From IMG/VR virus record IMGVR_UViG_3300042889_001503, positions 208,438-272,437 of that record: 64,000 nt of DNA. One strand, written 5' to 3'. The position numbers were made by a program, and so were the translations under genes. Below are positions 9,439-61,894 of the stretch, in pieces (position 1 is the first letter of the stretch; the number at the start of each line of letters is the position of its first letter). Under the pieces are notes generated by a model. The model did no database searches, was not told the DNA's origin, and saw only the letters and a list, made by a program, of their open reading frames with translations.

Positions 9439-9460
9439 AATTTATATGATATTTATTGTT

Positions 9461-25249: not shown

Positions 25250-25292
25250 TTTTATTTTGGAGTTGGGGGATATTTATTATAAAAGATATATT

Positions 25293-25625
25293 ATGTTTTC
25301 AGCAGGTGGAGTTTATGTAATGGTAGCAGGAATCCTATTGGGATTAGCTGTTATAGGTGGGTCAGTTTATTATGTTAATAAAATGTTTGCTGATAACACT
25401 CAGGAAATATTGGTTCGGTTTATTTTATTAATATTCACCTCATTGGTTGCGTTATTTATTGTTGATAAGGTAATTGCTTGGCAGGTTAAACTATTGAGTG
25501 ATGAGCAGAATGGGCAATTATTTGATTTGATTAAAACATTGGTGTTAATGATATTCTCGTATTACTTTGGAACTAAAGAAGGAGTTGAAACCAATGGTGA
25601 CCAAAATAAGAAAGATAAAGAATGA
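25293..25625 (+). CDS. Small 3-TM membrane protein (holin-like topology)
   Basis: Three hydrophobic segments, FSYYFGTK end motif, charged tail; TATTTAT at 25271-25277. Confidence 0.5.
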   Translation: MFSAGGVYVMVAGILLGLAVIGGSVYYVNKMFADNTQEILVRFILLIFTSLVALFIVDKVIAWQVKLLSDEQNGQLFDLIKTLVLMIFSYYFGTKEGVETNGDQNKKDKE

Positions 25626-44536: not shown

Positions 44537-44710
44537 ATGGGATTTATAGATAATCTTTACGCTGTGTATGAAAAAGTACCAGCACACGGGAGTAAAGAAC
44601 ATAATGTAATCTTGGCTCCTTTCAAAACTAAAGAAGAAGCAGAACAAAGCAGAATTAAATATGGTTATAACACCGATAATTATTACGTAGATATTTTGAA
44701 ATATGAATAA
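44537..44710 (+). CDS. Small hypothetical protein
   Basis: Manual ORF of 57 aa MGFIDNLYAVY. Confidence 0.5.
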   Translation: MGFIDNLYAVYEKVPAHGSKEHNVILAPFKTKEEAEQSRIKYGYNTDNYYVDILKYE

Positions 44711-45974
44711 ATTAGACAAAACATATCAGGACTTACTCCAAGACATTCTTGACAACGGAGTAGTAAAACAAGACAGAACAGGGACGGGAACAATCTCGGT
44801 ATTCGGAAGACAAATCAGACATAAAATGTCAGAAGGATTCCCATTACTTACAACCAAAAAAATGCCATTCAAAACAATCGTAACAGAACTTCTTTGGTTC
44901 TTAAGAGGTGATACCAACATTAAGTTTTTGGTTGATAATGGATGTAATATTTGGAATGGTGATGCTTATAAGAACTACATAAATAACCCAGCTTACAAAG
45001 CTGAATCTGTTGCCGATTTAATGGGTTCACAAGCAGGTCAATTGGTAAAATGCTCAACACAAGAAGAGTTCATCAACAAAATAAAGACAGATGATGAGTT
45101 TGCTAAGAAGTGGGGTGAATTGGGTCCAATTTACGGTAAGCAATGGAGAAATTGGGGGAGGTTTGAGTATGAAGGTTTCACCCAAGAAGGTAGCGAAACA
45201 TTAAATAACATAGATGTAAATTGGAAAATACCAACAGACCAAATCCAAAACCTAATCAACGACCTTAAAACAAATCCAGACTCAAGACGATTGATGGTTA
45301 ATGCTTGGAATGTTGGAGAACTGGACCAAATGGTTCTTCCACCTTGTCATTATGGATTTCAAGTTTATACAAGAGAGTTGAGTAATGAAGAACGATTAGA
45401 TTGGATGAGAGGTAATAAGTCTAAAGTAATCTTACCAATGAGAGACCCTAATATTGAGTTTTCTATGGATGAATGGTTTAGACCATACGGAGTTCCTAAA
45501 CGAGCAATCTCTTTAATGTGGAATCAACGTTCAGTAGATACATTCTTAGGATTACCATTCAACATTGCTTCTTATGGATTGTTATTAGAAATAATTGCAA
45601 AAGAAGTTAATATGGTTCCTGACCAGTTGATTGGGAATCTTGGTGATGTTCATTTATATTCAAATCATATTGAACAAGCCAAAGAACAAATTGGAAGAGA
45701 ATATACTCACCAAGAAAGAGATGAATTGTTACAACAAGAGATGGGTAGAGAAAGATATAATAAGGCGGTTGATGAATTGATGCCGTTCGGTGGGGGATTA
45801 AGTGGATATTATGAATTTTATAAAATTCCATATAGAACAAGAGAACCTTATCGATTACCAACATTAGTAATGGTTACTAACCCCGATTTAAAGTTTGATG
45901 AATATGTTTATGATAATTTAAAACTTGTAAACTATCAATCACATCCAACCATTAAAGCACCTTTAAGTAATTAA
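44703..45974 (+). CDS. thyA: Thymidylate synthase (ThyA type) with large in-frame insertions
   Basis: DRTGTGT, FPLLTTKK, ELLWFL, LGPIYG.QWR, MVLPPCH, QRSVD.FLG.PFN, GDVHLYSNH, IKAPLSN. Confidence 0.95.
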   Translation: MNKLDKTYQDLLQDILDNGVVKQDRTGTGTISVFGRQIRHKMSEGFPLLTTKKMPFKTIVTELLWFLRGDTNIKFLVDNGCNIWNGDAYKNYINNPAYKAESVADLMGSQAGQLVKCSTQEEFINKIKTDDEFAKKWGELGPIYGKQWRNWGRFEYEGFTQEGSETLNNIDVNWKIPTDQIQNLINDLKTNPDSRRLMVNAWNVGELDQMVLPPCHYGFQVYTRELSNEERLDWMRGNKSKVILPMRDPNIEFSMDEWFRPYGVPKRAISLMWNQRSVDTFLGLPFNIASYGLLLEIIAKEVNMVPDQLIGNLGDVHLYSNHIEQAKEQIGREYTHQERDELLQQEMGRERYNKAVDELMPFGGGLSGYYEFYKIPYRTREPYRLPTLVMVTNPDLKFDEYVYDNLKLVNYQSHPTIKAPLSN

Positions 45975-48641: not shown

Positions 48642-49202
48642 TTACGTTCCTTTAATGTATACCCAATTTTTTTGATAATTTTTATTCTTTATACAGAATA
48701 ACGCATATCCGTTAACAATAGGTCTCCCGGTATTATAACATCCGCAAACTAAACCCCAATTTCCGTATCTACCGTATAATTGATTAAGTAATTTCATACT
48801 TGTCCGGATATTGAGTTCAATGTTATTTTTTAAATCCCCTTTTGATATTTTTTGTTTATGAATATAATTTGCTGTTGATGGCATAATTTGCATTGGTCCC
48901 ACAGCACCGGCAAATGAAGTTTGTCCGGGTTTATATTTCCAATCAAATGGTCCTTTATAGTGAGTTTCTAAATACGCAACATTAAAGGCGATGTATTTGG
49001 GTATTTTGTAAATATTGGAGTAGTGGTCAATTAACTCGTACATCTTTAACGGAGTTGGGGAACTCACATCCGAGTTCCCCAATTCTGAAAGTTCAATACT
49101 TAGTTTTTTTTCTACTTTATTGTTCATCAGTTTGAACGACATTGTTATAATCATTGTCGACAAAATCAGTGTCGTAAATAAGATAATTCCTCGTATTTTC
49201 AT
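48642..49202 (-). CDS. Lytic transglycosylase (SLT family) with N-terminal signal/anchor
   Basis: AYLET, GAVGPMQIMPSTA, CYNTG; probable start MKIRG. Confidence 0.85.
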   Translation of the reverse strand: MKIRGIILFTTLILSTMIITMSFKLMNNKVEKKLSIELSELGNSDVSSPTPLKMYELIDHYSNIYKIPKYIAFNVAYLETHYKGPFDWKYKPGQTSFAGAVGPMQIMPSTANYIHKQKISKGDLKNNIELNIRTSMKLLNQLYGRYGNWGLVCGCYNTGRPIVNGYALFCIKNKNYQKNWVYIKGT

Positions 49203-49207
49203 AGTTT

Positions 49208-49549
49208 TTATTTTATAGTTGATGTCGAAACAGGGTTGTTTTGACCCCATACGTTTTTGGCGTATAGTTTAAAAATTGTTTTACCAATTGAGTCTTGGTA
49301 TATACTATAATTACCTGTTTTTTTCTCAATAACGATTAAATGGTTATTTTCATCTATCGCAAGATTGACTTCTGACTTAACAATTGTTCTCACTTGAACC
49401 TTTGAAATCTTGTCTTTGTTTATCATTTGGTTATAAAATATCCCGATAAAGAACGACGCAGTTACAGAACATAAGATAATTCCGTAAATTGTTACACTTT
49501 TAAAAAAAGGTGTAATTTTTTCTTTTAAACTTTTTAGTTTTTCATTCAT
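49208..49549 (-). CDS. Membrane-anchored hypothetical protein
   Basis: Single TM segment near N-terminus. Confidence 0.65.
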   Translation of the reverse strand: MNEKLKSLKEKITPFFKSVTIYGIILCSVTASFFIGIFYNQMINKDKISKVQVRTIVKSEVNLAIDENNHLIVIEKKTGNYSIYQDSIGKTIFKLYAKNVWGQNNPVSTSTIK

Positions 49550-53480: not shown

Positions 53481-54308
53481 ATGAAACAAACAAAAACTTA
53501 CCACGAATTGGTACAAAAAATGAGAACGTTCTTTGTAAACAAGAACTTTATTGAGGTTCCATCTCAATCACGATTATCTATTTTAGCTGCTTGCGAAAAT
53601 CCACATTCAGTTAAAACATTTGAATATGGAGGTGAAATTTGGCCGTTACCACAGACAGGACAAATGTGGTTGGAATATGAATTATTGAAAAATCCTGAAT
53701 GGGACGGTGTATTCTGTATATCAACATCATACAGAGAAGAGAAAAATCCAATCCCGGGTCGTCACGAATTAATCTTCCCAATGTTTGAATTTGAATCAAA
53801 AGGAACGATGGAAGATTTGGTTGCATTAGAACTTGAATTGTTACAATTCTTAGGATTTGATTCACCGGTTGAGGTAAACTATGAAGATGTGTGTAAAGAA
53901 TACGGTGGTGTATCCATTTTAGAGGACGAACACGAATCAAGAATGTGGAAAGAAAAAAGTGAGGTTATTTCATTACAAAACTTCCCAATTAGAACAAACC
54001 CATTTTGGAATATGAAACATAATTCAGATAACATCTTCAATAAGGTTGACGTAATCCTTTTTGGGCAAGAAACAATTGGTTCAGCTGAGAGAAGTTGTGA
54101 TGTTGTTAAGATGAGAGAGATGTTCTATACCATAGAAAATGGTGGTTACTCTCAGAAACTATTTGAATTATTTGGGAAAGATAGAGTTGAGAAAGAATTG
54201 GAAGAATTCTTATCTTTGGACTTCTTCCCACGTTTTGGTGCGGGGATTGGTCTAACAAGATTGGCGAGAGCTTACAATATAAATAAAGAATTAGTTGAGA
54301 CATATTAA
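53481..54308 (+). CDS. Class II aaRS catalytic-domain-only protein (AsnRS paralogue, asparagine synthetase AS-AR type)
   Basis: LPQTGQMWLE, STSYREE...RH...FPMFEFE (motif 2), ETIGSAERS, GAGIGLTRL (motif 3); no anticodon-binding domain. Confidence 0.8.
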   Translation: MKQTKTYHELVQKMRTFFVNKNFIEVPSQSRLSILAACENPHSVKTFEYGGEIWPLPQTGQMWLEYELLKNPEWDGVFCISTSYREEKNPIPGRHELIFPMFEFESKGTMEDLVALELELLQFLGFDSPVEVNYEDVCKEYGGVSILEDEHESRMWKEKSEVISLQNFPIRTNPFWNMKHNSDNIFNKVDVILFGQETIGSAERSCDVVKMREMFYTIENGGYSQKLFELFGKDRVEKELEEFLSLDFFPRFGAGIGLTRLARAYNINKELVETY

Positions 54309-54328: not shown

Positions 54329-54526
54329 ATGAAGAAATTTTTAACATTTTTAATAATATGGATTGGTAGTAATTTGGCAGTACCTTTTTGGGTTGTTGGT
54401 CACGTTCATTTAAGTTTGAATATCTATAAAGATATTTATGAAATCTTGGCTTCTTGTGGTATGAACATATTAGTTTTGTTGGCTTTTTGGTTTGAATGGA
54501 AAAAAGAGAAAAAAAAAGAAAATTAA
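54329..54526 (+). CDS. Small membrane protein
   Basis: Two hydrophobic segments; TATTTAT at 54318-54324. Confidence 0.6.
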   Translation: MKKFLTFLIIWIGSNLAVPFWVVGHVHLSLNIYKDIYEILASCGMNILVLLAFWFEWKKEKKKEN

Positions 54527-55120: not shown

Positions 55121-55201
55121 CACAAAAAAAAATAAAAGAAATAGTTAATACAATTATTTGTTGATATTTATTAGTAACCAAATCTATAAAACACAACAAT
55201 T

Positions 55202-56323
55202 ATGAAAAACCTATCAAAAGAAGAATTATTAAGCCGTCTTGAGGCAATTAACAGAAGTAATGCTATTATTTATTTCGATTTATCGGGAATTATATTAGGT
55301 GTTAATGACATTTTTTTGGTGGCAATGGGGTATGGAATCGGTAATCACGATGAACTTATTGGTAAACACCATAGTACTTTTGTATGTGAAGAATATGCAA
55401 AGTCACCTGAATATGAAAAATTTTGGGACATATTAAGAAGTGGTAAGTACTACCAGGGAGAATTTGAAAGGAGAAGAAAAGATAGAAGTCTTATAAATCT
55501 TCAAGCGACTTATAATCCTATTTTTGATGATAGTGGTAAGATTACTAAAATAATGAAAATCGCTACTGACATTACGTCAATTGTTGATAGCAAGAAACAA
55601 ATAGACGCAATTAACCGAAGTACTGCTCTTATTAATTTTAATACAGATGGATTTATATTAGATGTAAATTCTATATTTTTAGAAACTATGGGGTATAAAC
55701 CCAACGAAAAAAATAATTTAATAGGGAAACATCACAGTGTTTTTGTAAGTTACGAGTATTCAAAGTCCGATGAGTATATTAAGTTTTGGGAAAATCTAAG
55801 AAAGGGTAAGTTTTTTGATGGAATATTTGAAAGAAGAAAAGTAGATGGTTCTATTGTTTATTTACAGGCATCTTATAATCCTGTGGTTGACAGTAAAGGA
55901 AATATTACTGAAGTAGTTAAAATTGCGACAGATATTACTGAGTCAGTAAATAATAAGAAAAAAATAAATGAACTTACGACTAATTTGACAATTGAGTTGG
56001 AAAACTCTCAAAAACTTAAACACTCAATTGAATTAGAAAAAAATGCCGCTCTGAATGATTTAGATGTAGTATTGAAAAAGAGTCAAAATGAGTTAATAAA
56101 AATAATTGTTAAATGTGCATTGGCTGTTATAGTTGGTGTTGGTATTGTGACAACTATGTTATATTGGGTGGCTATTGTGACAAATCAAGATACACAAATT
56201 ATTGGTTCAACTTGGTCAAATATGTTTAGTGTATTATTAACTAACGCATTTTCAATCGTTGGTACAATTATGGGAATTAAATACGCCACGCAGGATGGTA
56301 GTAATAAACCCTCAAGTAATTAA
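55202..56323 (+). CDS. Tandem PAS/PAC sensor fused to coiled coil and two C-terminal TM helices, no output domain
   Basis: Two AINRS...IGKHHS.FV...FW..LR.GK...F.RR.......LQA.YNP..D..G.I....KIATDIT repeats; TATTTAT at 55165-55171. Confidence 0.85.
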   Translation: MKNLSKEELLSRLEAINRSNAIIYFDLSGIILGVNDIFLVAMGYGIGNHDELIGKHHSTFVCEEYAKSPEYEKFWDILRSGKYYQGEFERRRKDRSLINLQATYNPIFDDSGKITKIMKIATDITSIVDSKKQIDAINRSTALINFNTDGFILDVNSIFLETMGYKPNEKNNLIGKHHSVFVSYEYSKSDEYIKFWENLRKGKFFDGIFERRKVDGSIVYLQASYNPVVDSKGNITEVVKIATDITESVNNKKKINELTTNLTIELENSQKLKHSIELEKNAALNDLDVVLKKSQNELIKIIVKCALAVIVGVGIVTTMLYWVAIVTNQDTQIIGSTWSNMFSVLLTNAFSIVGTIMGIKYATQDGSNKPSSN

Positions 56324-56349
56324 AATTTACCACAAATAACTAAAATTGA

Positions 56350-56398
56350 ATTGTCTTTGATATTTATATTAATAAACTAATTAAATATCAAAGACAAT
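56350..56398 (+). promoter_or_regulatory. Perfect 17-bp hairpin covering the endolysin initiation region, with TATTTATA in its 5' arm
   Basis: ATTGTCTTTGATATTTA (56350-56366) / TAAATATCAAAGACAAT (56382-56398); ATG at 56399. Confidence 0.8.
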
Positions 56399-57223
56399 AT
56401 GTTATTAAAAGTAGGGTCGAAAGGTGACGACGTAAAAAAACTACAAACAAAATTAGGGACAACCTCTGATGGTAATTTTGGTCCCGGTACCGAGAAATTG
56501 GTTAAAGAATGGCAAACCAAAAACGGATTAACTGCTGACGGAATAGTTGGTGAAGGAACTTGGAAAAAAATGTTTCCGGGTGAGATAATCAAAGAAGATG
56601 TTGTGATTCCAACAGGTGGTCCATTTAAATTAGAAAAATTAAAAGGACATATCCCTGAATCAGTAATTGCTCAGATTCCGGACACAGCAAAAAAATTCAA
56701 CATTACTAATCCATTAAGATTAGCTCACTTCTTAGCTCAATGTGGTCACGAATCAGGTGGATTCAAATCAGTGTCGGAAAACTTAAATTATTCAGCAAAA
56801 GGTTTAAAAGACACATTTAAAAAATATTTTATAAGTGAAGCTGCGGCAACACCTTACGCAAAAAACCCTGAAAAAATCGCATCAAAAGTATATGGTGGAA
56901 GAATGGGTAATGGTGATGAATCTACAAAGGAAGGTTATAAATTCAGAGGTAGAGGATATATCCAATTAACTGGTAAAGACAACTATAAAAATTTCACTAA
57001 ATTCATCGGAGAAGATTGTATTGGAAATCCTGATTTAGTTGCAACAAAATATCCGTTAGCGTCTGCGGCATTCTTCTTTGACTCAAATAAATTATGGTCT
57101 ATTTGTGATAAAGGCTCGGATGATGCTACGGTAACGTCGGTTACTAAAAGAGTAAATGGTGGAACCATTGGTTTACCTGACAGAATTAAACACTTTAAAG
57201 AATATTATAACTTATTAAAATAA
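56399..57223 (+). CDS. Endolysin: peptidoglycan-binding domain plus GH19 catalytic domain
   Basis: LKVGSKGDDV..LQ..L...DG.FG..T; RLAHFLAQCGHESG; RGRGYIQLTG; VTKRVNGG..GL.DR. Confidence 0.92.
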   Translation: MLLKVGSKGDDVKKLQTKLGTTSDGNFGPGTEKLVKEWQTKNGLTADGIVGEGTWKKMFPGEIIKEDVVIPTGGPFKLEKLKGHIPESVIAQIPDTAKKFNITNPLRLAHFLAQCGHESGGFKSVSENLNYSAKGLKDTFKKYFISEAAATPYAKNPEKIASKVYGGRMGNGDESTKEGYKFRGRGYIQLTGKDNYKNFTKFIGEDCIGNPDLVATKYPLASAAFFFDSNKLWSICDKGSDDATVTSVTKRVNGGTIGLPDRIKHFKEYYNLLK

Positions 57224-58186: not shown

Positions 58187-58879
58187 TTAAGATAAGTCTT
58201 TGGACATATTGATTGCAGCTTGTAAAGCCATTCCCATATCCTCAATTACTAATTTACCACGTTTCTTATATGGTATAACATAAGATATACCGGATTCTCT
58301 CATCCATTTTTTATCTAACTTGTCAGATTTACCATATAATTCAAGATACTTATATTCCCAACCAGCCCATTCCCACTCTTCGTAGTCTTCTTCTTTTGGT
58401 TTATAGTCGGCATCAAATAATCTATCCCCAATTTTAAATGTTTGACCTCCTCTGTGTGTATATCCGTGGTAACCAATTAGTTTATTATTATCGTCATATA
58501 CTTCAGCAACTCCGTGAGGATATTCCTCACAAACTTTCATTTTGTTTTGGTAATACCACCAACCACGTTCAATATCACCAACATATTCATCATCTTTGGT
58601 TAAAAATGAATTTGGTAAATGTTGTTCTCTTTTTAATTCTGGGGTATCTCCAAAATAATGAGAACCAATTTTTCCTCCGGTATATTTTTGTATAAAATAA
58701 ATACATTCCGGATTTATTAACCACCCATTTAAATCTCGGTGTGGAGTAATTCGGGACACTAGTTTTGTGAAACCTAAATTAATGTGAATTTTGTTTAATT
58801 TAGATTTTCCGGTATATTCAGGGTATTTTTCAAACTTTAATTTGATTTTCCCAATGTAGGGAGTTGTATTTTTTATCAT
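58187..58879 (-). CDS. Hypothetical protein
   Basis: Probable start MIKNTT; track start 58954. Confidence 0.7.
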   Translation of the reverse strand: MIKNTTPYIGKIKLKFEKYPEYTGKSKLNKIHINLGFTKLVSRITPHRDLNGWLINPECIYFIQKYTGGKIGSHYFGDTPELKREQHLPNSFLTKDDEYVGDIERGWWYYQNKMKVCEEYPHGVAEVYDDNNKLIGYHGYTHRGGQTFKIGDRLFDADYKPKEEDYEEWEWAGWEYKYLELYGKSDKLDKKWMRESGISYVIPYKKRGKLVIEDMGMALQAAINMSKDLS

Positions 58880-58927
58880 AATATAAAATTTTATGTAATG
58901 ATATGAAATTTCAAAGTATTTATCAAT

Positions 58928-59167
58928 ATGAAAATTAGAATAACTGAATCGCAAATAAAAAAAATCGAAGAAGGTATCTTTTGGGATGAGGAGAACTTAA
59001 ATGCGTTAAAAGGTATTACGGGAACCAAACAACAAAAAGAAGTCTTTAATGTTGAGGTAATAGAACCATTTTCAATAACATTGACGGATTCAATTCAATA
59101 TCATAGATTAGTTTATATATTAAGAACAAATGGTGTTAAATTTAAAGCTAAGGTTGATAAAATATGA
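58928..59167 (+). CDS. Leader-bearing hypothetical protein
   Basis: MKIRITESQIKKIEE; TATTTAT at 58917-58923. Confidence 0.7.
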   Translation: MKIRITESQIKKIEEGIFWDEENLNALKGITGTKQQKEVFNVEVIEPFSITLTDSIQYHRLVYILRTNGVKFKAKVDKI

Positions 59168-60025: not shown

Positions 60026-61894
60026 ATGGGAAAAATTATTGGAATTGACTTAGGAACAACTAACTCGTGTGTCTCTGTAATGGAGGGTAACGAACCGGTT
60101 GTAATAGCAAATTCAGAAGGTAAAAGAACAACACCTTCAATCATCGGTTTCATCAACGAAGGAGAAAGAAAAGTTGGTGACCCGGCAAAAAGACAGGCGG
60201 TAACCAACCCGACTAAAACAATATCATCAATTAAACGATTTATGGGTTCTACCTATGACGAGAGTAAAAACGAAATTGGGAAAGTTCCTTACTCTGTTGT
60301 AAACGAAGGTTCTCAACCAAGAGTTCAGATTGACGATAGAAAATACTCACCACAAGAATTGTCGGCAATCATCTTACAAAAGATGAAACAAACTGCCGAA
60401 GATTATTTAGGTGAATCAGTAACTGATGCGGTAATCACCGTCCCAGCTTACTTTAACGATGCCCAACGTCAGGCTACAAAAGAGGCGGGTGAAATTGCCG
60501 GATTAAATGTTCGTCGTATTATCAACGAACCAACCGCGGCGGCTCTTGCGTATGGACTTGACAAAAAAGGTGATAGTAAAATTGTTGTGTTTGACTGTGG
60601 AGGGGGAACTCACGACGTGTCTATTCTTGACTTAGGTGGTGGTGTATTTGAGGTATTATCTACCGATGGAGACACACATTTAGGAGGGGACGACTTTGAC
60701 AGAGTCATTATTGATTTCTTGGTTGAAGAATTTAAGAACGATAATGGTGGTTTAGACATCTCAAAAGATGCTATGGCATTACAAAGGTTAAGAGAAGGTG
60801 CTGAGAAAGCGAAGGTTGAATTATCTTCATCACCTCAGACAGAAATCAACTTACCTTATTTAAGTGCTGATGCTACCGGACCAAAACACTTGGTAAAAAC
60901 ATTAACAAGAGCGAAGTTTGAACAACTTGCGGCTGAGTTAATCAAAAGAACCATTGACCCTTGTAAAACGGCATTGAAAAACGCGAAACTTAAGGTTTCC
61001 GATATTGATGAGATTATCCTTGTTGGTGGAACAACAAGAATCCCGGCAATACAAGATGCGGTTAAGAAGTTCTTTGGTAAAGAACCATCAAAAGGTGTTA
61101 ATCCGGATGAGGTAGTTGCGTTAGGTGCGGCTATTCAAGGAGGTGTATTGGCTGGTGATGTGAAAGACGTGTTGTTATTAGACGTAACACCACTTTCATT
61201 AGGTATTGAAACAATGGGTGGTATTTTAACACGACTTATTGAGGCAAATACCACAATCCCAACCAAAAAGTCACAAGTGTTCTCAACAGCTGTTGATAAT
61301 CAACCTTCTGTAGAGATTCACGTCTTACAAGGAGAGAGACCAATGGCAAAAGACAACAGAACGATGGGTAGATTCCATTTAGATGGTTTACCACCATCAA
61401 TGAGAGGTGTTCCTCAAATTGAGGTAATCTTTGATATTGACGCGAATGGTATCATCAATGTATCTGCAGTTGACAAATCAACAAACAAAACACAATCAAT
61501 TAGAATTGAGGGTTCAACGGGATTATCTCAAGAGGATATTGAAAGAATGAAGGCTGAAGCTGAAGAAAATGCTGAAGCGGACAAAAAACTTAAAGAGGAT
61601 GTGGACACATTAAACTCCGCTGACAACCTGATATTCCAAACAGGTAAATCTTTAACGGATTTAGAGGATAAGATTTCTGAAGAACAAAAAACAGAAATAA
61701 CAACTCTTCTTGATACCTTGAAAGAATCTCATTCTAATAAAGATGTGGAAAATGTTAAAACGATTATGGAAGAACTTACCCAAAAGTTTCAAACCATCAC
61801 ACAGGAATTATACAATAGTGTAAATGAGAGTGAGACTCCGGAATCAGATATTAACGCTTCTGACGTAGAGTTTGAAGAAGTTAAACCTGAGTAA
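60026..61894 (+). CDS. dnaK: Hsp70 chaperone DnaK
   Basis: [57 protein letters not shown]. Confidence 0.98.

Follow-up and report, generated by a model that had tools for sequence, protein, structure and literature searches.

In this study, we describe a phage gene, here called PAS-TM, whose product couples two PAS sensor domains to a hairpin of two transmembrane (TM) helices and which lies directly upstream of an endolysin gene in a 64,000-nucleotide stretch of viral DNA (IMG/VR record IMGVR_UViG_3300042889_001503, positions 208,438 to 272,437). This stretch, referred to throughout as the window, makes up the final 64 kb of a 272-kb contig and has a GC content of ~31%. Our findings lead us to lean towards the PAS-TM protein being a signal-responsive membrane effector of the phage lysis machinery, a role predicted from its sequence, from the second way in which relatives wire the same hairpin to a sensor, and from the company that both forms of the gene keep.

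The open reading frame (ORF) and the Pfam profiles both agree with a preliminary description of this DNA, which had read from it a 373-residue protein with two PAS domains. Two copies were detected by PAS_3 (3e-23, 82 bits against a cut-off of 25.6) and PAS_9 (2.5e-22, 79.5 bits against a cut-off of 27), and PAS families were the only Pfam matches; no kinase, MCP/MCPsignal, HAMP, GGDEF, or EAL domain was found in the protein, so that the lack of a kinase, MCP, GGDEF, or EAL output in that description stands and extends to HAMP. Hydropathy likewise bore out its two hydrophobic helices and short polar tail, with a strong TM1 at residues ~301 to 327, a moderate TM2 at residues ~341 to 359, and then the tail KYATQDGSNKPSSN, which carries two Lys and one Asp. 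In an AlphaFold2 model built from a 40-sequence alignment (predicted local distance difference test score of 85, and >90 in the PAS folds), an N-terminal cap helix (N-cap, residues 6 to 19) is followed by PAS1 (21 to 123), a linker helix (125 to 140), PAS2 (142 to 244), an uninterrupted helix of ~80 residues that runs from the stalk into TM1 (246 to 326), a loop (327 to 331), and a second helix (332 to 364). The coiled coil of ~45 residues in the preliminary description was therefore upheld as a long helix but not as a coiled coil, given that the stalk shows only a weak heptad pattern, with hydrophobic residues at 7 of 16 a/d positions. Four Lys precede TM1, the loop contains no Lys, and two Lys lie past TM2, a distribution that fits an N-in/C-in topology. 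TM2 is amphipathic, and nine polar or small residues (S339, N340, S343, T347, N348, S351, G354, T355, and G358) fill one half of the helix.

The same hairpin is found at the end of a second type of protein. In a related contig (L130) and its relatives, it terminates a 225-residue protein that has no PAS domain and is encoded by the third and last gene of an operon, downstream of genes for a GAF-PAS-PAS-HATPase_c histidine kinase and a 143-residue Response_reg receiver (the relay form, as opposed to the fused form of the window). The 225-residue protein shares 63% identity with the window protein across 100 residues and has the same invariant loop and TM2, and the second PAS domain of the kinase is 53% identical to PAS1 of the window protein, N-cap included. 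Both HATPase_c (1.9e-14) and Response_reg (4.6e-8) scored above their cut-offs in L130. The kinase retains its N, G1, and G2 boxes and the receiver its acceptor Asp motif and conserved Lys; thus, a kinase with an ATP-binding domain and a receiver with an acceptor Asp are co-encoded, as expected of a two-component system. The model of the 225-residue protein consists of a small helical head, a helix of ~148 residues that continues into TM1, a 5-residue loop, and TM2. The two forms exclude each other, and no kinase, receiver, or GAF sequence was found in the window or at any of 89 fused-form loci. The slot between the AsnA-like and 59-residue-protein genes on one side and the GH19 endolysin gene on the other is taken by one form or the other in megaphage-like lineages. 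That one hairpin is wired either by fusion or by phosphorelay is a Rosetta-stone relationship, which argues that a PAS-based sensory pathway has the hairpin as its output. The preliminary description had proposed that the PAS domains control the membrane segment, and the operon lends this proposal independent support.

Both forms of the gene are linked to lysis genes. In the window, the endolysin gene starts 75 nt downstream of PAS-TM, and the GH19 enzyme that had been placed there from the letters alone was recovered by profile searches as a PG_binding_1 plus GH19 protein of the soluble type, in which no signal or signal-arrest-release segment was found. The PAS-TM gene adjoins an endolysin gene and a small two-TM gene in at least five distinct contig backgrounds. 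On syntenic megaphage contigs, the order is a TM plus coiled-coil protein (i-spanin-like), PAS-TM, a lipoprotein (o-spanin-like), and a peptidoglycan-binding GH19 endolysin, and on unrelated contigs of ~100 kb with giant ORFs, PAS-TM is followed in turn by genes for a 74-residue two-TM protein, a short GH19 enzyme, and spanin-like proteins. Further orders are endolysin-PAS-TM-HOL and PAS-TM-HOL followed by an endolysin with PG_binding_1 and another catalytic domain. HOL denotes a holin-like small two-TM family of 93 distinct sequences with an amphipathic N terminus, two TM helices, and a highly charged tail; no described family was matched by it.

We took a census of 80 fused-form loci and the 80 best relay loci in IMG/VR, scoring neighbors within 3 kb and treating the loci with full flanks as a separate subset; neighbors were detected by BLAST against a handful of references, and absences are to be read as soft. 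HOL lay near the PAS-TM gene at 63/80 loci (30/39 with full flanks), an endolysin at 58/80 (29/39), and both together at 47/80 (22/39), across at least eight gene orders and five endolysin reference types. Around the 225-residue hairpin gene, which has at least 525 relatives in IMG/VR (the best 80 loci being 57 to 100% identical), the receiver was present at 76/80 loci (49/49 with full flanks), the kinase at 67/80 (47/49), and an endolysin at 45/80 (31/49). Where no HOL was detected at relay loci, other small two-TM proteins adjoin the endolysin, of 57 residues in L239 and 70 residues in L183/L184. The preliminary description had offered synteny in relatives as a check on its lysis link, and the linkage proved to be conserved despite permuted gene orders and non-homologous endolysins. 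At loci anchored on HOL itself, the family is commonly accompanied by spanin-like genes and GH19 but not by PAS-TM, and related phages (L097) have the GH19 endolysin without PAS-TM. Given that both are found without PAS-TM, HOL is the likely core holin and PAS-TM an accessory. The small TM proteins that reside beside PAS-TM belong to at least three to four unrelated families, which argues against holin-specific binding and for either self-assembly or a conserved host partner.

The pattern of sequence constraint singles out the loop and TM2. PAS-TM has >5000 metagenomic homologues, the top 120 of which are 84 to 98% identical, and clustering at 50% reduced the family to two or three representatives: the two-PAS form, a one-PAS form, and P0372, which matches residues 149 to 325. 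Among the 120 homologues, residues 330 to 364 (loop plus TM2) are 100% identical, the N-cap is ~99% identical, and the PAS domains are 86 to 90% identical. We compared codons across 51 distinct genes as the per-codon fraction of differing sequence pairs. The loop plus TM2 gave 0.374 for synonymous and 0.011 for non-synonymous differences (ratio, 0.03), and the N-cap (residues 1 to 27) gave 0.370 and 0.032 (ratio, 0.09); the values for PAS1, linker, PAS2, stalk, and TM1 were 0.23 to 0.31 and 0.13 to 0.23 (ratio, 0.4 to 0.9). By this comparison, the invariance of the loop and TM2 reflects extreme purifying selection rather than a recent spread of the gene. When both forms are taken together, the variability of TM1 shows a 100-degree periodicity, with one face conserved and one variable. 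TM2 is conserved on every face, and the mean entropy of loop plus TM2 is 0.15 bits. The hairpin module was found only in viral contigs. Searches of GenBank phage records gave no DNA match to the stretch and no protein match to the hairpin module, hits to the PAS region alone being confined to three records; thus, no cultured phage with the module was found among them.

The shorter variants that are real comprise the one-PAS form of ~250 residues (L005/L006) and the 225-residue relay form. A "no-PAS" variant of 144 residues in L007 was rejected as an artefact, produced where its scaffold has a run of N, and most of the remaining short hits of the fragment search were contig-end fragments. Likewise rejected were the "no-PAS" variants of L008 and L009, in which the gene is broken by a 1-nt deletion in a T run, through sequencing error or a real frameshift. 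The change from GTTTAC to GTTAC leaves ORFs of 227 and 140 residues (L008:370-1475 and L009:329-1434); the same deletion is present in two samples of one study and may be an artefact, a pseudogene, or a frameshift site.

We considered what the PAS domains might sense. The nearest PDB sequence to PAS1 is MmoS (3ewk, 6e-10), and the nearest to PAS2 is the PAS domain of Aer (8dik, 2.6e-5); overall, the nearest solved sequences and structures are those of MmoS, NifL, Aer, DosP, FixL, and LOV-PAS. Foldseek matched the model to MmoS at 9.6e-16 and to the tandem-PAS sensors MmoS, NifL, DosP, and FixL at E values of 1e-15 to 1e-12. In FAD-binding PAS domains, a Trp on helix Falpha is the primary determinant of flavin adenine dinucleotide (FAD) binding, and the secondary determinants are a His in the Aer and AerC clusters and an Asn in the NifL and Aer clusters (PMC10468136). 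The Falpha Trp is kept in both PAS domains of the window protein as W75 (PAS1) and W196 (PAS2), which align with Aer W70 and the MmoS Trp and are at least 90% conserved across the family alignment. H57 and H178 align with Aer H53, and Aer H58 aligns with C62 and S183; the Asn position is occupied by Arg (R90 and R211). Flavin binding by the PAS domains appears plausible. The fused PAS domains are equally similar to phage kinase PAS domains (54 to 56%) and to the PAS domains of cellular methyl-accepting chemotaxis proteins (MCPs; 49 to 55%), which favors neither as their source.

We hypothesize that the PAS domains, possibly flavin-bound, would sense a cytoplasmic cue, for example, redox or energy state, and that the PAS signal, or the phosphorylated receiver in the relay form, would alter the stalk helix and, through TM1, the packing of the hairpin. 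The hairpins would self-assemble, with TM2 in the core and TM1 at the lipid-facing rim. A homo-oligomer with a TM2 core is favored by the constraint on all faces of TM2, by the free face of TM1, and by partner proteins that are diverse or unrelated. Holins fire on membrane depolarization. Switched-on hairpins could leak ions or depolarize the membrane and in this way fire the separate canonical holin, upon which the soluble endolysin would be released and the time of lysis would become conditional on host physiology. That the hairpin sets lysis timing as a gated, self-assembling, membrane-depolarizing trigger appears more likely than that it acts as a classical antiholin, although within this frame the chief alternative is a hairpin that works as a brake (antiholin polarity). 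A broader proposal is one that we put forward tentatively: that these phages carry a signaling pathway of their own, fused PAS or PAS kinase-receiver relay, whose hairpin output decides the moment of lysis. Such a pathway would be the first in which canonical bacterial sensory domains gate a lysis clock; it would probably sense host redox or energy state and be widespread in uncultured freshwater Bacteroidota phages.

Several points weigh against assigning the protein to lysis control. No holin or antiholin family in Pfam, PHROGs, NCBIfam, or PADLOC was matched by the hairpin module or by the whole protein, and Foldseek against BFVD returned nothing significantly holin-like, the entry "Holin [Proteus phage phiP4-3]" scoring E = 0.074. 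In the window genome, HOL lies ~11 kb from the PAS-TM/endolysin pair and on the other strand, which we read as a dispersed lysis cassette in this lineage, and 31/80 relay loci have no detected endolysin within 3 kb. Many of the census loci come from one lake time series and are phylogenetically non-independent, and HOL and the spanin-like proteins were identified by topology and position only. The replacement of the flavin-contacting Asn by Arg leaves the cofactor of the PAS domains uncertain, the RNA evidence is fragmentary, and the polarity of control could be that of a trigger or a brake. What we say of the function of the module is drawn from sequences, models, and synteny.

The PAS-TM protein could instead be the holin proper, with a large regulatory cytoplasmic domain and with its small two-TM neighbors as antiholins or accessory proteins, a possibility that we regard as unlikely. 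A precedent is holin T of T4 with its large regulatory domain, and the distance of HOL in the window lineage would fit. PAS-TM is directly upstream of a soluble endolysin in the window, as is the hairpin gene in relay loci L183, L184, and L239, and its amphipathic TM2 has a polar stripe and is far more conserved than the neighboring genes. Like a holin, it has at least one TM helix and a place in a lysis cassette near an endolysin (58/80 fused and 45/80 relay loci), but holins are expected to be shorter than 150 residues with a charged C-terminal tail, and the three forms measure 373, 250, and 225 residues. Almost every locus has another holin candidate close by, a small two-TM protein with a charged tail, which makes the hairpin probably not the main hole-former. 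Cassettes of HOL, spanin-like genes, and GH19 exist without PAS-TM, and the gene is missing beside the GH19 endolysin of related phages (L097), hence its status as an accessory; the lack of a holin family match adds to these objections.

It is similarly unlikely that the protein is a classical antiholin, in which the hairpin blocks the holin until a PAS or relay signal frees it and lysis inhibition becomes signal dependent. HOL is adjacent at 63/80 loci, a cytoplasmic sensor is joined to a TM segment, and membrane-anchored regulators beside holins are known in lambda (S107), phage 21 (S71), and T4 (RI/RIII). Antiholins of the lambda and phage 21 type are expected to be homologues or isoforms of the holin, but a search for the hairpin as a paralogue of HOL failed (hhalign probability of 1.9% and 6 aligned columns against the 93-sequence HOL profile). 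The partner TM proteins come from several unrelated families and diverge to ~40% identity while TM2 is invariant on all faces, and holin-specific heterotypic contacts are hard to reconcile with this combination. The holin/antiholin-like module that the preliminary description saw in the TM segment was thus not borne out, given that neither a family match nor detectable paralogy to HOL emerged, and a comparison with holins by Foldseek and profiles found nothing significant. The best BFVD match was a phage histidine kinase, and a protein atlas searched with the C-terminal module gave nothing but unnamed viral clusters, which scored 0.71 at most, within the range of chance.

We also consider it quite improbable that the protein has no lysis role and is a membrane-tethered sensor or effector acting on a conserved host component (respiratory chain, transport, or superinfection exclusion), its proximity to lysis genes reflecting a clustering of membrane and late genes. 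A TM2 that is invariant on every face would suit an effector that binds some conserved membrane protein of the host, the family carries no functional annotation, and the 31 relay loci without a detected endolysin nearby point the same way. However, the proximity to endolysin and holin-like genes survives shuffled gene order and exchanged endolysin type and is seen for both forms, and no PADLOC or other family match was found. The other option raised in the preliminary description, that the protein is a dominant-negative decoy of a host chemoreceptor (one with PAS domains), is very improbable, although the nearest cellular PAS pairs belong to multi-PAS MCPs (44 to 48% identity), which is why JGI annotates many PAS-TM homologues as "methyl-accepting chemotaxis protein," and the order of PAS followed by a TM hairpin recalls the N-terminal half of Aer; the protein has no HAMP or MCPsignal domain, its TM module was found only in viral contigs and stays with lysis genes, the relay form is entirely without PAS, and the probable hosts are Bacteroidota, which are as a rule without flagellar chemotaxis.

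Regulation of lysis timing is known; what would be new here is the type of input and the membrane module. In T4 lysis inhibition, which involves the holin T, RI, and RIII, lysis timing is likewise made conditional on a signal through regulatory domains that are part of or act on the membrane proteins of the cassette, and T4 also sets a precedent for lysis membrane proteins in which a large domain lies outside the membrane. However, there is no sequence or fold relation to the T4 proteins, and the T4 signal (superinfection) is periplasmic and is perceived by small dedicated proteins, whereas the input of the PAS-TM module is cytoplasmic PAS or a kinase/receiver phosphorelay and its output is a two-helix hairpin. 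The phage 21 pinholin S21-68 and antiholin S21-71, as well as lambda S105/S107, resemble the hairpin in being two-TM membrane proteins with an N-in/C-in topology. The pinholin TM2 has a small/polar stripe and lines a small depolarizing pore, with the state of TM1 controlling activity. Unlike those proteins, which are regulated by N-terminal charge or a dual start, PAS-TM (373 residues compared to ~70) carries a fused sensor; no homology was detected to them, and a pore is only predicted for the PAS-TM hairpin.

On the sensory side, Aer and AerC share with the window protein the PAS subfamily (PAS_3, with the Falpha Trp kept and 8dik nearby) and, in the N-terminal half of Aer, the order of PAS and TM hairpin; they differ in that PAS-TM lacks the HAMP and MCP domains, has an unrelated TM hairpin, has Arg for Asn, and belongs to a phage lysis cassette. 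The tandem PAS domains and C-terminal signaling helix are reminiscent of MmoS, NifL, DosP, and FixL, but the outputs of those proteins are kinases, phosphodiesterases, or partner binding, whereas in PAS-TM the signaling helix enters a membrane helix. VqmA-Phi of vibriophage VP882 is likewise a phage-encoded PAS sensor, through which a small-molecule cue informs the lysis decision. It is a soluble transcription factor acting on the lysis-lysogeny switch, whereas PAS-TM is a membrane protein inside the lysis cassette. In the literature searched, we found no paper tying PAS domains or phage two-component systems to holins, antiholins, or other lysis proteins.

The features of the PAS-TM region and its flanking genes are collected in Table 1.

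Table 1. Positions of PAS-TM, its parts, and adjoining features (coordinates within the window)
Feature	Position	Strand	Basis
PAS-TM gene (PAS-PAS-stalk-TM hairpin, 373 aa, ATG start)	55202..56323	+	ORF, Pfam, AlphaFold2 model
N-terminal cap helix, aa 1-27	55202..55282	+	99% identity in 120 homologues; modeled helix aa 6-19
PAS1, aa 21-123	55262..55570	+	Pfam
PAS2, aa 142-244	55625..55933	+	Pfam
Stalk helix, aa 246-300, continuous with TM1	55937..56101	+	AlphaFold2 single helix aa 246-326
TM1, aa 301-327	56102..56182	+	Kyte-Doolittle up to 2.56
Predicted periplasmic loop, TM2, and membrane-proximal tail, aa 330-364, TQIIGSTWSNMFSVLLTNAFSIVGTIMGIKYATQ	56189..56293	+	Invariant family core
Promoter-like motif TGATATTTAT, 31 nt upstream of PAS-TM start	55162..55171	+	Exact 10-mer
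Perfect 17-nt inverted repeat ATTGTCTTTGATATTTA / TAAATATCAAAGACAAT, 15-nt spacer	56350..56398	+	Abuts endolysin ATG
Endolysin, PG_binding_1 + Glyco_hydro_19 (GH19), soluble type	56399..57223	+	Pfam; phrog_181 6.6e-67
65-aa two-TM protein, KKEKKKEN tail, TM aa 4-24 and 36-56	54329..54526	+	Holin-like by topology

PAS-TM and the endolysin gene also share a promoter-like element. The exact 10-mer TGATATTTAT occurs only three times in the window (at 9447, 55162, and 56358), and it is common to the two genes at -37/-38. The shorter TATTTAT, which the preliminary description had reported as a late motif ahead of PAS-TM, was found there and is associated with gene starts. It is not overrepresented in the window (64 copies compared to 54 expected), but 12 of its 39 plus-strand copies lie 10 to 13 nt ahead of the ATG of an ORF (random expectation, 0.3; maximum, 4 in 2000 trials), a positional bias strong enough that we take it as a real gene-start signal. 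We also noted ATATTTAT 10 to 13 nt before the ATG of ~12 plus-strand genes (starts at 584, 6528, 12416, 14134, 20638, 29368, 37108, 48252, 54329, 54777, and 58928), a placement that implies a putative phage promoter class which would give nearly leaderless mRNAs. The inverted repeat ahead of the endolysin gene folds as RNA at -19.7 kcal/mol (z = -6.6), and its left arm holds TGATATTTAT; on read-through transcripts the repeat could block translation of the endolysin, or it could serve as an operator, and it was not conserved in relatives L001 and L013. Other genes of the window carry TATCTTTG, which matches TAnnTTTG, the -7 promoter consensus of Bacteroidota. The TTATCTTTGT motifs upstream of 23166, 51068, 52378, and 61978 fit the same consensus, which suggests host-polymerase (perhaps early) promoters and a Bacteroidota host. 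A scan for sigma-70 promoters and terminators found nothing beyond expectation near PAS-TM. Short metatranscriptome contigs, mostly from relatives, overlap PAS-TM and the endolysin gene; they include no transcript ends and do not prove that the genes are transcribed.

The 65-residue two-TM gene lies upstream of PAS-TM between the AsnA-like gene and the gene for the 59-residue protein, with TATTTAT at -11. It is limited to the window lineage (L010, L011, L013, and L015) and absent from L001 to L003, and its product matched no family in Pfam, PHROGs, NCBIfam, or PADLOC. The HOL homologue of the window genome was located at L173:4761-4979 (minus strand), ~3.7 kb beyond the window end, and is 66% identical to that of L001. 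Elsewhere in the window, a 122-residue membrane protein (25257-25625) is 43% identical to a 107-residue multi-TM protein in the lysis cassettes of L008, L021, L050, and L051, which has a weak Pfam match to the LydA holin (Phage_holin_3_3, E = 0.02); by this similarity, the 122-residue protein may represent a second holin-like family, unlinked in the window genome. An SLT lytic transglycosylase domain (3e-13) is encoded at 48642-49250 on the minus strand, 6 kb upstream, as part of a second peptidoglycan-degrading enzyme, which could be virion-associated or an accessory lysin.

The AsnA-like gene (53481-54308) encodes a class-II aminoacyl-tRNA-synthetase-like protein (tRNA-synt_2; phrog_29758, 1.8e-96) and in megaphage-like lineages keeps its place next to the module in its fused as well as its relay form. 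Just downstream of the lysis genes, the window encodes a homologue of Tad6, a type I Thoeris inhibitor (8e-13; 58187-58954, minus strand), and a DnaK/HSP70-like protein (phrog_22485; 60026-61894, plus strand) that is 67% identical to that of the 635-kb uncultured huge phage LR745206. Relative L001 has a cREC_REC gene, which the window lacks. The thymidylate synthase at 44703-45974 is 423 residues long compared to 280 in the syntenic L001, and its Pfam domain falls in two stretches, which implies a putative in-frame insertion of ~140 residues, perhaps an intein or another insert. A syntenic relative lies on a 464-kb contig. Two of four contigs from metagenome-assembled genomes with the gene were binned as Flavobacteriales and Saprospira from Lake Mendota, and the RNA runs in which pieces of the stretch were found come from freshwater; a freshwater bacterium of the Bacteroidota is the probable host.

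Among the life-history traits of a lytic phage, the timing of lysis ranks first, and its known regulators answer to holin concentration, membrane potential, or superinfection. The family described here is abundant, as its homologues in metagenomes and IMG/VR attest, yet it has gone unannotated or been mislabeled as a chemotaxis protein, and its small, modular parts make it experimentally tractable. The hairpin module may also offer synthetic biology a compact signal-gated membrane switch. If our reading is true, phages use canonical sensory modules to sense host physiology when timing lysis, which would have consequences for burst size and, in lakes, for bloom and diel dynamics.

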